Assembly (NCBI RefSeq): GCF_001194135.2
Contig: NC_068985.1
Coordinates: 27,269,957-27,333,956, forward strand
Direction: 5' to 3'
Length of the DNA stretch: 64,000 nucleotides
Source: Octopus bimaculoides
Lineage: Eukaryota
Shown here: positions 24,512-58,260 of the stretch, one piece after another
Numbering within the stretch: position 1 is the first letter of the stretch
Layout of the letters: every line of letters starts with the position of its first letter
The notes under the pieces: generated by a model
Databases searched by the model: none
What the model saw: the letters and a program-made list of their open reading frames with translations, nothing else
What the model was told of the DNA's origin: nothing
Made by a program: the position numbers and the translations under genes

Positions 24512-24835
24512 AGTATGGTCAAATGGTTGAGAAGTTAGCTTTACAATCATCAATTTCAGGGTTTGATTCTATTGCATAGCATCTTGGGTGACTGTCATTT
24601 TCTGTAGTTCCAGGTTGAACCCATGCTTTTTGAGTTGGAAGGTTGGAAACTGTAGAGAAGCCTTTCAGATGGATTGTACCTATAATTCAAAGGAACAACC
24701 TTGTACATACACAGTGTGTCTCACTGATTCTGCCTGCGAATTACATTAAGGGTACATATGTTTGGGCAATGCTCAACCATTTACACATCAATTCAGGAGT
24801 AGGTAATTCATTGACCAGACAAATGAAACTTCGTC
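24512..24835 (+). mobile_element. Old mosaic SINE: family A-like head with family C-like body
   Basis: Head resembles family A; AATTCAAAGG..CCTTGT.CA.AC..TGTGTC.C.CTGA..C...GAA.TAC.TTAAGGGTACA matches 27650-27720. Confidence 0.6.
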
Positions 24836-27872: not shown

Positions 27873-28937
27873 ACAAGGGTGGGCTGAAAACTTCATGGGC
27901 TGACTATAAGGAATGATGTTAGAGCTGTAAAATCTTGAAGGCATTAATTTTAACTCTTCTTATTAATAACTGCATTGTTTCTTTCCAGGCAAACTGCCAT
28001 CTAACTGTTCAAAGAACACTTCAAAAATAACTAGTAGCAACTTCTCTTGAAAATGGACAAAATTTGAAATCGTGGTGTTATCTAGTACCTGCAGAAAAAA
28101 GAGTTTAGTCTCCAAGGAAATTCATGCTGACATGGTTGCTACATTAGTGGGCAGCTGATTTTAGGAGCGAAAGGGAGAGTCTTCAACATGATGCATGGTT
28201 GGATATCTTGCAACTGCCACCACTGAAGAAAACATTGATCGTATTTACTACATGGTAATGGATGACAGGCAACTGACTATAAATCAAATAACCAATGCTA
28301 TGAGCATATCCTGTGACAGAGTTGAGAATGTTCTCCACAATGAACTCGACATGATGAAGGTTCCTGCTTGGTGGGTGCCCATATCTTCTGACACTTGATC
28401 AAAAGCACACCAGGTTGATTACATCATAGGAAGGCCAAGGTTGTTTCATCTGCAGGGAAGGTGATATCCTCAGTTTTTTGGGATGCAAAAGGTTTATTGA
28501 CTATCTTCAAAAGAGCCACACCATCAATGGGGAATACTATGTCAGCTTGCTGAGGCAGTTACAAAAAGGCTATCAAGACCAAACACCCAGAAAAACTGAC
28601 GAAAGGGGTCTTGTTTCTTCAGGACAATACTCCAGCATACAAGTCCTTCATTTCAATGGCTGCTGTGCGTGATTGTGGCATTGAACTGGTTGATCATTGT
28701 CCCGATTCTCTTAATTTGGCTCTGACTATCTCAACATTAACAAACACTTGGCTGGGAACCAGTATCACAGTGATGATGACATCCTGTCTGCTGTTGATAA
28801 CTTTCCAACAGGATGAAAACTTCTTCACCAATATCAGTGTGTGGACTGCAAGGGAGTCTATGTTGAAAAATAACATTATTTGGTCACATTCTATGAGATA
28901 TCTTGGTCAGTCTAGGAACTTTTCAGCTGATCCTTCT
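27873..28937 (+). mobile_element. Decayed, internally deleted mariner transposon (irritans/HsMar2-like)
   Basis: Degenerate 32-bp TIRs, 24/32 match (ACAAGGGTGGGCTGAAAACTTCATGGGCTGAC vs the reverse complement of the right end). Broken transposase motifs: MDKI*NRGVI, WWVP, GKVISSVFWDAKG, YLQKSHTINGEYY, LQDNTPAYKS, HCPDSLNLA (cf. HPPYSPDLAP). Confidence 0.9.
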
Positions 28938-29179
28938 TTTAGTAAAAATAACTAACACATTTATTTCAATATTGAATCAGTGTTTGGATCAATGAGATGT
29001 AGCATAAAATGATGGAAGGTTTTAATTCAAATATGAACATTTTAAAATAGGTATTTTTCTTTTGAAGAATGAGAGACAATGTCAGGTGGGTTTAGTAGGA
29101 AGAAGGTTAGCCACAATTGGACCTGTTACTTGAGTGCAATGACAACCCTTACAGGATTTGCTGCAACTCTGAAGTATTA

Positions 29180-43721: not shown

Positions 43722-43930
43722 TGAGCCTGCAGATCGTTAGCACAACGAGCAAAATGCTTAGAGGCATTTCGTTCGTTTTCACGTTCCGAGTTCAAATTTC
43801 GCCGAGGTTGACTTTGCCTTTCATCCTTCCTGGGTCGATAGAATAAGTACTAGCTAACTATTGGAGTAAATGTAATCGCCTTACCCCCTCCCCCGAACTT
43901 GCTGGCCTCGTACCAAAATTTGAAACTAAT
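43722..43930 (+). mobile_element. SINE family B copy
   Basis: GAGTTCAAATTTCGCCGAGGTTGACTTTGCC; CpGs retained. Confidence 0.85.
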
Positions 43931-44177
43931 GTTACCAGCAATAGTTGATTTCTCGGGCATCAAGTTAACCTCTTCCCATTGCTAGGGTTGCCCTCTGGAT
44001 GGTTTCTTCTCTAAGTTTTGGATAAAAAGACAAAGGTTGAATTTTCGAACAGGTCAGCTTGACCCAGAGAATGAAGTTTTGATACAAGATACTATTTCAG
44101 AAATTGTCATGTATTTAAGAAAAATTCGAAACAGCTGAAAATTATAAATGGAAGGAAAGAATCAAAATGATTAATAA

Positions 44178-45170
44178 TAATCTTTTCTACTCTAGGCACA
44201 GGGCCCGCAATTTTTGGGGAGGAGGCCAGTCGATTAGATCGATCCCAGTACGCAAGTGGTACTTAATTTATCGACCCTGAAAGGATGAAAGGCAAAGTCG
44301 ACCTTGGCGGAATTTGAACACAGAATTTAAAATGATTAATAATGATAATAAAAACAATAGAACAATCATGTCTCATCGTCGTTTCTTTCTTAGTTCACGA
44401 TGCTACAGGATTCATGTCTCTGTTTTAACAGATACAAGGCCTGGCAGGGTAAGAGAACACTCGATTACATACTGCTGATCCACCGTCCAAAATAGTCGTT
44501 TCTAACATAGGCAGAGGGGCTGAAATTTGAAGTGGGGAAGGTTAGTCGATTAAACCGACTCCGATGCGGAGAAAGAAGGTTGACCTCGGCAGGATTTGAA
44601 CTCAGAACATAAAGACTTTGAAGAAATGCTTTACAGTATTTAATTTGGCTCATGTATATTCTGAGTTGAGATCATACCAGAATCGATTTTGAATTTCATC
44701 AGTGCAGTACAGGGGAAGGGTCGATAAAATCGACCACCTTCTTTCACCCATAAATGTTGTGGCCTTGCAGCGTTCTAAAGAAAGAACATTATCATCATTA
44801 TTGGAAGAGGGGAAAGGATCAGTGGATGGTAGAATACAGTGTTTAGCTACGTTCTATTATTTACCGGGTTCGAACATATCCTGCTGAGGTCAAGCTTCCC
44901 TTCCATCCTCCTAGGTACAAAAATATCGTATTTGATGGCGTATAAGACTAACCATTTTTCTTTCTTTTCGAAAAAGGATCTTTCGTCTGTCTTTACATTC
45001 TGAGCCGAGGTCGACAAAATAAGTACCAGTTGGGCACTGGGGTCAATGTAATCGACTAGACGTCTCCCCACAAAATTTGAAACCAATATGAAAGGATAGA
45101 ATGTTTTGTAGGATATGTCCCCGGCCGAGGTCAGCTTCACTTTTCATCATTTTGGGATCGATGAGTGAAG
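44178..45170. mobile_element. Cluster of several SINE family B fragments in both orientations
   Basis: Fragments at about 44178-44330 (-), 44490-44650 (-), 44660-44800 (+), 44860-44920 (+) and 44975-45170 (+). Confidence 0.7.
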
Positions 45171-45460: not shown

Positions 45461-46289
45461 AAGCTTGAATTAGTTTGACTTTGTTGATGAGCTTCGCTCT
45501 AGTATAACTAGAACCCAAAGAGAAGAAATTCAAATTCCAAAGAAATTTAAAGCCTAATTTTACACACCATTCTGTTTCGCGCGCGCCCGGATGTGTGTAG
45601 GAGTATGTTTAACAAATTCGATGTTGTGCTCATTTGGCATGCAGCTGAAAATTCTGCCTGTGTTTATGCACCAGAGACATGTGTCTCAGGATATACTTTA
45701 ATGTCTCTAGTTGTTTTAATCCAATTAGCCTCACTTTCTGTGTGTGTGTGTGTTATCGACCGCACAAACTTAATGCATGTGTTCTGTTTGCTCGCCGGTT
45801 CGCTGTCGTACAACGGTCTGGGGACGACTCCCTCATAGCACTTGGTATTACAATACCTGAAAGTCATAGACTAGCAAGACAACTCGCCCCCAGTCCCATC
45901 TAGGAGCGATGGATACTGATATTTCATCATTTTTGTACCTGAATCGAACAGAGGGCGAACTGAATTGCCAGTCTATGACTGTATACAAATAGAGTAAGAA
46001 CCATCTGCTGGTACGTCACGACGATGCATGATCTCACAAGTCAATCTTCCAAGCAGAATCTGTGCGATTAGGCTGGCTCTTTGAATTACACGTACAATCC
46101 ATCTCATGAGCTTCAGCAAAGTTTCTGTCTTTCCAATTTCATTCATAAAGCTTGGTTGGACACTTGGCCAAAGTGACGTAAACGTTCACGACTTGGGACG
46201 ACAATTTTGAAAGAGAGACTGTGAGATACCATAAAACGAGATGGAGAGATAGAGTGAAGAAAGTGACAGACGGTGAATCGAGACGACGT

Positions 46290-47170
46290 AAAGAGAAGTC
46301 ATGCCGAACTGAAAGAAATCATCGTGAATGAGCTTTGAGGTTTAGTTTGAGCTGAGAAAGGAGGTGAACACGAACTGCGAGGTAACATCGAACTGAGAAA
46401 AGGTCACCCAAAACTGAAAGAAGAAACCATCCAGAGGTCAGCCTTACCGATGAGAAATCAACTTTAATCAAGAGAAGGTCACTTCAAACTAAGAGAAGAG
46501 GTCACTTCGAACTGCCAGAGGAAGTCAACCTGAACTGCGAGGTCAAACGGAGCCGAGATAAGTGGTTAGCTTGAAACAAGAGTGGAGATCAACCAGAGGT
46601 CACCCCGATCTGAGAGAAAGGTCAGATTGAACTGAAACAAGAAACCTTGAACTGAAAGAGGTCATACTGACCTGAAAGCAGACGCCACTCAAGGGGTCAG
46701 AGAAGAGAATAGGTCACTCCGAACTGAAAGATGAAGTCAGCCTGAACTGAGAGAAGGCAAACCAAAACTGACAAAAAGGACTAATTTTAGAAAGAGAGAG
46801 GCGGTCTCCTTCAACTGAAAGAGGTCACTCTGATCTGAGAGAAGAGGTCACTCTGAACTGAGAAGACCTTCGTCAAAACAAAGGTCATCCTGTATTGGGA
46901 AGTCATAGAAAACTGAAAGAGACGCTTCTCTGAACTAAAGAGGTATCTAAGAGCCAAAAGATGATTTGGGACAAAAAAGAAGTCATCTTCAACAGAAGTA
47001 CAAGTTCAAGTCACCTTGAACTTGTACAGAGTAGATGTCATCCTGAAACAAGGGCAGTAGTAACACGGTGCAGATATACAAGTCAGCATGAACTGGGGGT
47101 GGGTGGTGGGTTTCCCTAAACCGAGACGTCATCCTATGGAGAGACATGGTCTCCTTAAAGGAAAAATTAA
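46290..47170. repeat. Degenerate tandem array of ~18-23-nt units, consensus AGAGGTCACNNTGAACTGAAAG
   Basis: About 20 recognisable units, e.g. at 46401, 46476, 46499, 46522, 46597, 46619, 46659, 46711, 46734, 46822 and 46845. Confidence 0.85.
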
Positions 47171-47262: not shown

Positions 47263-47296
<34 letters not shown>

Positions 47297-47369
47297 ATAT
47301 ACAAGAAGCGTCACTCGCAAATGAAAGAGAATCATATGAAACCGACATAGATGATAAGATAGGCCGGAA

Positions 47370-47600
47370 CTAAAAGCTACACTTATTTACAAGAGAAGCT
47401 ATACTGGTTAGGTGAGAAGCTACGGTTAACTGGAAGAAAAGGATTCGCTCATCTAACAGAAGACATACGTTTTAACTGGTACTTAAGTTACGTTTAGTTG
47501 GACATGAAGCTACGTTCGTCTGAAAGAGAAAGTTACATCTGACTTGGAGAGAAGCTACGTTTGACTGAAAATGATGATTCGTTCAACGGGAAGAGATTTT
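47370..47600. repeat. Degenerate tandem array of ~22-nt units, consensus AGAAGCTACGTTTRACTGGAAG
   Basis: About 10 units read directly. Confidence 0.8.
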
Positions 47601-49124
47601 AGGCGCAACCAAAAACAGGGACAGGTACACACAAAAAAAAAAGTGATGTTGTTCGGACAAGAGAAGGAAAAAGTGAAAACTAGAGATAAGGAGTAGCGAG
47701 AGAGAAAAGAAAGACAAATAAGTAAGGAGATGTCAAGTTGAACGAAGACGACTAATTAGTGAGAGATATACAGATGTTAGACTGGATTCAGAGAGAAATA
47801 GACATATGCTACGTAGAGCTAAGAGAAAAAGATGGTCACATGGAGAGAGAAAGAAAGAGAGATGGGGAGAGAAGATGGAAGAACGAAGGAAAGACAGAGA
47901 GAGATGTTATGCCAAAGTAATTTCTTTTCATAGCCAAACTATCGGTTTACTTGCTAATTTCACATGATATCATCTGACAGCACAATTTCACGACAAACCA
48001 ACGGAACATTCGCCGTTTTAAATGAAACGAAGCAACATTATCTGTCGCAATCTTTGCAATACATAAATATTTATGATTCGCACACACATACGCATTTTTA
48101 TACCTACTTTCACACATACTGAGAGAGAAAGAGAGAGAAATGATTATAAGAATTCCACTTGTCCGAGAGAAAAATGTAACAGATGTGTGTGTACGTGTGT
48201 GCGCGCGCGTGTGTTTCAACGCGCGAGTACGCACACACTATGAAACCGAAGTAGAAAATATTTGATTCACAGCCACTTAGGGGTTGGTGATATTTAGAGA
48301 TAGACGTTTAGTCAAATTGACAACTCGTGTTACATACAGCACAGCGTTATTACTACACCCACTCTCTAGTCATTGGAAATTCCAAATAAAATTAAAGTCG
48401 AAAAGAAAAGAATAATAGCTCGAAGAAACAAAAGAAAATTTATAGAAAACACTAAACACAGTATGGGCGATTGTGTACGCTTTTTGTGTTGTGTGAGGGC
48501 GGTGGACATGAGTTTCAGATGACCAAGGTGAGAGTTTCTATGAGTGCTCTCACAAGACAGCATCGAGTCAGTATGGGATTAGATTGTTGTTGTATAGGCC
48601 CAGTCCAGCCCTGATTGAGCAGGTCTATTAATATCAAAGGAATTTCAATCATCCTGACTACTACATTATTATTAATTATTATTAATTTTGCTTTATTTCA
48701 CACGGTCGAAACTGATATGCAGAAAAGAAAGTAGGATAAACTGTGAATACAGAGGAATGTATGGAGGACACATTTAACCGGATGGGACCTTCAGCTATAG
48801 TGGAGATTAAAAACGACTACATATTATCCGGAAATGCAAACAGCTACGCGCACGCACATACACAGAGAGTGTATAACGAACTTTCTGTTAACAAGATAAA
48901 ACATACGTATGTGTTACCATAATTACGAATGCCCCATCACTCCTCTCTGTTATTAGGCTGGAGGTGTATTGTCGGCCATACTGTTCTAAACAGCAGGTAA
49001 ATTTGATAGTTCTTAATTGCACGTATCTCCTATACACTGTTATATATATATAAACGTGTAAACATTATATATACACATACATATGTATTTACAAATACTT
49101 ATATGCATATAAACACACACACAT

Positions 49125-57884: not shown

Positions 57885-58260
57885 TGTGTTGCCATGTAGC
57901 TGTAATGGTGACTGTGTGTTACCATGTGGCTGGAATGGTAGCCGAGAGTTGCCATGTGGTTGGAATGGTAACTGTGTTACCATGTAGCTGGAATAGTGTC
58001 TCACCATGTAGCCAGACTGGTGATTGTGTTGCCATGTGGCTAGAACAGTGTTTCCATGTAGCTCGAACGGTGACTGTGTGTGTGTCTGGAATGGTAACTA
58101 AGTGTCGCCGTGAGGCTGGAATGGTGACGGCGTGTTACCATGTGGCTGGAACAGTAACTGTATGCTGTCATGTGGTTGGAATGATGAGTGAGTGTTACTA
58201 TGTAGCTTAGTTGGTGACTAAGTATTGCTATGTCGCTGGAATGATGACAGCGTCGACATG
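57885..58260. repeat. 30-bp minisatellite, consensus GTGTTRCCATGTRGCTGGAATGGTRACTGT
   Basis: About 13 degenerate units; starts at 57888, 57918, 57948 and 57976. Explains the ORF 57905-58210. Confidence 0.9.

Follow-up and report, generated by a model that had tools for sequence, protein, structure and literature searches.

The cluster of estrogen response element (ERE)-like sequences at 46293-47100 of a 64-kb stretch of the Octopus bimaculoides genome (64,000 nucleotides of contig NC_068985.1, positions 27,269,957 to 27,333,956 of the forward strand; hereafter the window) is a very degenerate, single-orientation minisatellite with a unit of ~23 nt. We consider it most likely, with a modest degree of confidence, that we are looking at a decaying minisatellite whose ERE likeness goes back to its founder unit and which probably has no receptor-specific function. 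Two blocks of the unit, A.GTCA and (G)AACTGA.A, are kept better than the spacer between them and, less strongly, better than the linker. A putative binding-site array maintained by selection, whether for a nuclear receptor or for another factor, is the alternative to which these blocks point, and we hold it to be possible but on the whole unlikely.

Organisation of the tandem array

A weight matrix, seeded with exact pattern matches, iterated and used to call units on both strands of the 64-kb window, recognised 22 head-to-tail units between 46293 and 47100, all on the plus strand and none on the minus strand. This agrees with the original prediction of about 20 ERE-like IR3 palindromes at 46290-47170, every quoted example of which lies where it had been placed. 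Since all 22 units have the same orientation, the array is a direct tandem repeat. Column tables give the unit profile aaG-A-R-G-T-C-A-y-y-y-Y-g-A-A-C-T-G-a-r-A-g, and the mean divergence of the units from their consensus is 25%. Base autocorrelation is maximal at lag 23, and TRF reports a period of 23 in pieces at 46471-46527 and 46819-46863 only; together with the single-strand units, these periods bear out the suggestion that the cluster is minisatellite-derived. Neighbouring units are spaced by 18, 20, 21, 22 or 23 nt or by multiples thereof. Spacings of 18-23 nt had been pointed out before and are correct; the apparent phasing near two helical turns that had been read into them is simply the length of a ~23-nt unit.

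The main array has ~38-41 unit slots, about half of which are no longer recognisable, and irregular stretches break it up. Its best-kept core (46496-46864, plus strand), defined by repeat families D2, D10, D12 and D13 and by lag analysis, contains dimer repeats of 45-46 nt (46496-46540, 46708-46752 and 46819-46863) that are 82-84% alike. Lag analysis also gives traces, and traces only, of a higher-order period of ~160-163 nt, such blocks being 56-63% alike. The traits of a minisatellite found here are thus one orientation, a head-to-tail arrangement, a defined period, a non-coding sequence, and neither a known nor a structured RNA.

A coding repeat is ruled out, there being no open reading frame (ORF) of at least 60 aa across the array and, for 46285-47130 translated in six frames, no homologue among 5.8 billion predicted proteins (E <= 0.01). 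A structured RNA or hairpin array is likewise ruled out by folding z values of +0.87 and +0.74 on the two strands, no better than shuffles; Rfam families and tRNAs are absent from the window.

A non-repetitive interval and a (TA)20 microsatellite (47263-47301, TRF) interrupt the repeat, which then runs on to ~47600, so that the array is longer than 46290-47170. The sister sub-array beyond the microsatellite (47305-47600, plus strand) has ~8-9 units of 22 nt, GAGAAGCTACGTTTGACTGAAA, seen in the sequence itself, in the unit list, in repeat families D8 and D14 and in the autocorrelation, which peaks at 0.385 at lag 22. Sister and main units have a purine linker and (A)ACTGA in common, and CTACG stands in the sister units in place of the main-array AGGTCAC; ACTGA is therefore kept in the sister sub-array, from which GGTCA is absent. 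The plus strand is purine-rich throughout 46.2-47.9 kb (AT skew 0.28, GC skew 0.19), and a GA-rich, purine-only tract (gagagagaaagaaagagagatggggagagaag...) at 47640-47900, just 3' of the sister sub-array, prolongs this strand asymmetry.

ERE likeness of the units

The consensus unit, AGGTCActcTGAACT, has one mismatch to the canonical ERE, an IR3 of RGGTCA half sites. Nine sites in the 64-kb window match the pattern RRGTCANNNYGAACT exactly, each of them on the plus strand and within 46296-47094, against 0.10 expected from dinucleotide-preserving shuffles. The statement that most units read RRGTCA-n3-YGAACT holds when one mismatch is allowed (15 of the 22 units), but the exact pattern is found in only nine. 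The spacer had been described as varied in sequence and fixed in length, which it is: all 12 of the triplets listed are present, and the 22 units carry 16 different triplets at constant length.

The exact ERE that had been reported at 46659-46673 is indeed there, as AGGTCAtacTGACCT, and pattern search and unit list agree that it is the single perfect ERE of the array. The pattern RGGTCANNNTGACCY has two matches in the window, at 46659-46673 and at 44051, against 0.01 expected. Counted over the 12 specified positions of the true ERE, AGGTCAnnnTGACCT, one unit has no mismatch, three have one, seven have two, six have three, four have four and one has five; only four of the 22 units thus come within one mismatch of a true ERE, and 11 lie at three to five. 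AGGTCA forms the left arm of 10 units unchanged, TGACCT the right arm of one and TGAACT that of seven, the perfect ERE being one A->C change away from the common right arm TGAACT. The column profile predicts 0.01-0.03 perfect units when the unit at 46659 is left out and 0.15 when it is included. One perfect ERE among the units appears mildly unusual on this profile, and is not decisive given the many outcomes that could have been found "interesting".

Within 0.9 kb there are 12 copies of AGGTCA and eight of TGAACT; the rest of the window has 0.43 and 0.30 per kb, respectively. This density is far above chance because one unit was tandemly duplicated, and density alone is therefore no sign of selection. 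Furthermore, a random 23-nt unit comes within one mismatch of the ERE core with a probability of 3-4e-4 and within two with a probability of 0.5-0.6%, so that a large, repeat-rich genome is expected to hold ERE-like arrays by chance.

At loci bound by human ERalpha, elements with up to two mismatches are classed as high-stringency EREs and those with three or four as low-stringency; one third of the high-stringency EREs sit in repeats, and loci with at least three EREs within 2 kb make up ~3% of the ERE-containing loci (PMC2853111). By these criteria, which are lax, 11 units would be high-stringency ERE-like and 21 of the 22 have at most four mismatches, and the density of ERE-like sites here is extreme beside that at the human loci.

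Outside 46290-47170, AGGTCA occurs 27 times on the plus strand against eight occurrences of TGACCT, which exceeds what the modest excess of A over T and G over C predicts. These outside copies lie in diverse contexts, some of them within SINE-like copies.

Uneven conservation across the unit

In the 22 aligned units, the left arm is conserved at.95 (A), R (G.64), 1.0 (G),.91 (T),.82 (C) and.95 (A). The four pyrimidine-rich columns that follow fall to.50-.55, the right arm T-G-A-A-C-T is kept at 0.55/0.73/0.95/0.86/0.95/0.95, and the columns 3' of it at.91 (G19),.73 (A20), then r, and.91 (A22). GTCA-only and AACTG-only anchors were used so that the columns tested were not pre-selected by the weight matrix. 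When all 23 GTCA words serve as anchors, conservation is.70-.87 in the downstream AACTG block and.35-.61 in the four spacer columns; when all 15 AACTG words do, it is.73-1.0 in A.GTCA and.47-.53 in the spacer. No 5-mer is as frequent as AACTG (15 copies); among 6-mers, AGGTCA leads with 12 copies, followed by GAACTG and AACTGA with 11 each.

A comparison of half-site with spacer and linker columns had been proposed as a check on the cluster, and we made it among paralogous units, not orthologues. Nearest-neighbour unit pairs differ by 0.145 per half-site column, 0.27 per linker column and 0.456 per spacer column (chi-square p = 3e-5), that is, half-site columns have ~3x fewer differences than the spacer and 2x fewer than the linker, and transitions and transversions are each ~3x rarer in them.

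Neutral simulations with a uniform per-site rate, star-like and tree-like duplication histories, transition bias and indels were passed through the identical pipeline, CpG hypermutability being included in the second simulation set only. In ~900 successful runs the contrast between spacer and half-site columns reached maxima of 0.27 and 0.19, compared with 0.34 observed, and simulated arrays at this divergence contain ~2-3 exact seed matches compared with nine in the real array. With the independent anchors the column pattern persists, yet is weaker: the dispersion, a conservative index, is 2.0 over 19 columns (about p = 0.007 on 18 df, our own estimate), against 1.08 in a control minisatellite elsewhere in the window. 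The simulations never reproduce the column pattern, and uniform neutral decay is rejected as a full explanation; together with the independent-anchor dispersion, they indicate that the heterogeneity among columns is real. A purely neutral array should not show such uneven columns.

The control minisatellite (57886-58250; ~12 units of 22-30 nt, GTGTTRCCATGTRGCTGGAATGGTRAC) has columns that are approximately binomial, two of them A/G-polymorphic. Its unit contains an internal inverted repeat, GTTRCC...GGTRAC, which we take to resemble RFX X-box half sites.

The blocks that are kept, A.GTCA and (G)AACTGA.A, do not make up an ERE with dyad symmetry. Eight of the 22 units have A at the second G of AGGTCA, a position that is invariant in the established RGKTCA half-site consensus. 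At the start of the right arm, T and G are the dyad counterparts of well-kept left-arm positions (C and A), but only 55% and 73% of units keep them, and the consensus right arm, TGAACT, has A where the true ERE (TGACCT) has C. G19, A20 and A22 belong to no half site and match the arms in conservation, and conservation mirrored about the dyad, with GGTCA as the best-kept core, was not found in the 22 units. Columns 13-14 read CG in seven units, TG in about 10 and CA in two, a mixture that fits the decay of an ancestral CpG, so that the T of TGAACT may be secondary.

Probable origin as a decaying minisatellite

In the account that we favour, a founder unit of ~23 nt, roughly GAGAAG-AGGTCA-CTC-(C/T)GAACTG-A, would have been multiplied head-to-tail, in part as 46-nt dimers and as blocks of ~160 nt, by what we infer to have been slippage or unequal exchange, and the units would later have decayed by point mutation and small insertions. 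As the arms of this founder are 5/6 complementary at IR3 spacing, each surviving copy looks like an imperfect ERE, and one copy would have turned into a perfect ERE through its single A->C change. The main array is adjoined by the diverged 22-nt sister array. Most or all of the array would then have no dedicated receptor function.

This account is supported by the one-strand tandem anatomy, the period of 23, the dimer and ~160-nt traces, the 25% divergence and the loss of GGTCA from the sister units. The control minisatellite, in which an inverted repeat also happens to resemble a transcription-factor site, counts in favour of a chance origin of the ERE likeness. The better-kept A.GTCA and GAACTGA.A blocks are unexplained by a neutral history, and our confidence in the decay account is for this reason not higher. 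If the array is neutral, as we think the more likely case, it is a caution: any repeat with a half-site-like word in its unit will resemble a striking cluster of binding sites, and density by itself is no evidence of function. If the kept blocks do reflect selection, they would show how tandem duplication can make a dense homotypic regulatory element in one step, and the array would be a concrete genomic target for the role of the constitutive mollusc ER, or of another nuclear receptor, in cephalopods.

Genomic surroundings

The placing of the cluster in a CpG-retaining region is borne out. The CpG observed/expected ratio is ~0.15 from 1 to 37 kb, 0.6-1.1 from there to 49 kb, ~0.2 between 49 and 50.5 kb and 0.6-0.96 in the remaining 50.5-64 kb, and the array sits in the CpG-retaining block, ~9 kb from the edge of the CpG-depleted one. 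The domain boundary at ~37 kb is sharp; inside the depleted domain the ratio rises locally at 27-28.5 kb. These domains look like mosaic methylation. By analogy with the mosaic methylation known in invertebrates, the CpG-depleted block is presumably a methylated gene body, and the block that holds the array would be unmethylated and intergenic.

Composition-ranked ORFs in the window yielded no convincing exons, minus-strand ORFs of at least 48 aa from 1-40 kb, joined as a 4965-aa concatenate, had no homologue, and five ORFs looked up by exact sequence had no recorded product. The minus-strand gene upstream of which the cluster had been placed is therefore a putative one. That the window is eukaryotic is clear from its N gaps and microsatellites, together with SINE-like copies and the remnant of a mariner element. 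We take its SINE fragments to be octopus-type and, by eye, the plus-strand ORF fragments at 28190-28950 and 1117-1662 to be remnants of a mariner-type transposase and of a LINE reverse transcriptase, respectively.

Alternative explanations

Selection could have kept both blocks as putative sites for a factor other than a nuclear receptor, one that reads A-R-G-T-C-A-N4-G-A-A-C-T-G-A-N-A, the ERE likeness then being incidental. The kept columns span ~19 nt and go beyond the 3' end of the supposed half site, no 5-mer outnumbers AACTG, GAACTG and AACTGA come directly after AGGTCA among 6-mers, and ACTGA is the part common to the sister sub-array. The excess of column heterogeneity over the neutral models and the control array also argues for such sites, as it does, equally, for those of a nuclear receptor. 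A Myb- or IRF-like protein that reads AACTG(A/G)AA, or a multi-zinc-finger protein, could be such a factor; we offer these as examples by resemblance only. Against such a factor, its candidate readers rest on motif resemblance, the anchor-independent heterogeneity is moderate (2.0 over 19 columns) and the neutral models are simple, and the motif has been lost altogether from about half of the unit slots. We regard this explanation as distinctly unlikely, although it fares best among the specific alternatives to decay.

The array could instead belong to a transposable element, foldback-like or a non-autonomous DNA transposon, as its internal or subterminal tandem repeats, in which case many copies would be found in the genome; this would be compatible with the other explanations. 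A piece of ~70 nt that includes irregular units (46408-46476) recurs inverted at 43950-44021 (minus strand), 2.4 kb away, as found through repeat family I2, blastn and local alignment: the two are 84% alike over 49 nt, blastn gives an E of 1e-8, and the local alignment scores 73 where shuffles score 28 +/- 5. The inverted copy has GGGCA where the array has GGTCA. It is adjoined by an isolated near-ERE, AGGTCAgctTGACCC, which pattern search places at 44051-44065, between SINE-like arms. Furthermore, the left flank of the array (46062-46136) matches dispersed repeats at 24635, 27639 and 43047 weakly (blastn within the window), and the neighbourhood is rich in SINE-like copies. Together, the inverted copy and the flank matches are hints of a local inverted duplication or of a TE-borne origin.

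However, apart from this inverted piece and the near-ERE at 44051, no copy of the unit lies elsewhere in the 64-kb window, and the surroundings of the array show neither terminal inverted repeats nor target-site duplications. Beyond the 70-nt piece, which is the sole support for a foldback element, 42-44 kb has no inverted homology to the array. The translated array is also unmatched among the 5.8 billion predicted proteins, which is weak evidence against an element because intergenic ORFs are rarely called. A transposable-element origin seems to us unlikely, and we rank it after sites for another factor.

The SINE-like arms lie at 43777-43934 and 44175-44332, in opposite orientation; they are 158 nt long, 73% complementary and 240 nt apart, and they enclose both the inverted copy and the near-ERE AGGTCAgctTGACCC.

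The original prediction was of an ER-type IR3 enhancer or sink. In this explanation the array would be a putative homotypic nuclear-receptor platform, on which a constitutive cephalopod ER, ERR, RXR partners or NR4A-type monomers would occupy AGGTCA or AGTTCA, and it would act as enhancer or sink in the unmethylated block. The enrichment of AGGTCA and TGAACT in 0.9 kb, the perfect ERE, the 11 units with at most two mismatches, and the half-site columns that are better kept than a spacer of fixed length are what such a platform would lead one to expect. Three of the AGGTCA copies are extended 5' by AAA, as NR4A-type monomer sites are. Mollusc ERs, that of Octopus vulgaris included, activate without ligand, as had been noted for the Octopus ER (PMC3886901), and a consensus ERE is reported to be bound by one mollusc ER (PMC3778743).

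The fine structure of the units argues against the platform. The positions that are kept are not dyad-symmetric and differ from the needs of a receptor dimer at the second G, the inner T and G and the right-arm A; conservation at the three positions outside the element is as good as in the arms; and GGTCA has been lost both from the sister sub-array and from the inverted copy. We therefore consider a nuclear-receptor platform improbable.

The fullest version, in which a minisatellite has turned into a phased array of ~20 putative bipartite docking sites, kept by selection in an unmethylated intergenic domain, with the ligand-independent cephalopod ER or a different nuclear receptor as their reader, is in our view very improbable; were it true, the array would be a super-site born of a tandem repeat, a concentration-dependent enhancer or sink for a constitutive receptor.

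Comparison with known repeat systems

The decaying-minisatellite account places the array among VNTR-type minisatellites, which have units of 10-100 nt and include old variant arrays. With these it shares its single orientation, its period of 23, its dimer and ~160-nt traces, its intergenic, non-coding site, the adjacent microsatellite and the strand-asymmetric purine richness. It is, however, much more decayed than the minisatellites that TRF usually calls, and whereas the control minisatellite has a few scattered variant positions, variation in the array is concentrated in a block of 3-4 nt between the two kept blocks.

Alu-borne EREs bound by human ERalpha are likewise imperfect IR3 elements owed to a repeated unit (PMC2853111). 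They are dispersed single sites in a vertebrate, with ChIP, EMSA and reporter evidence, whereas here ~20 tandem, putative sites lie within 0.8 kb. Furthermore, the consensus right arm of the array is TGAACT and not TGACCT, and the ER of the host is ligand-independent.

As in homotypic clusters of transcription-factor sites, many copies of a short motif lie close together here, having arisen by tandem duplication and not independently, with the motif columns better kept than those around them. Enhancers derived from tandem repeats include the GGAA microsatellites bound by EWS-FLI1 and the CTCF-site macrosatellites.

The array also resembles iterons, which are direct repeats of ~22-23 nt (~two helical turns) with the same bipartite motif in each. 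Iterons are few and nearly identical and lie in plasmid, phage or bacterial origins, whereas the array is eukaryotic, long and degenerate. A metagenome scan for related arrays returned five loci, all unrelated. Positions 1-140 of the metagenome contig Ga0187780_10001795 (L005) carry six exact or near-exact tandem copies of the 23-nt AAGGTCATTGTGAACTGACCGGC, which are iteron-like and unrelated to the window, and which look like the array because the search pattern forced the likeness.
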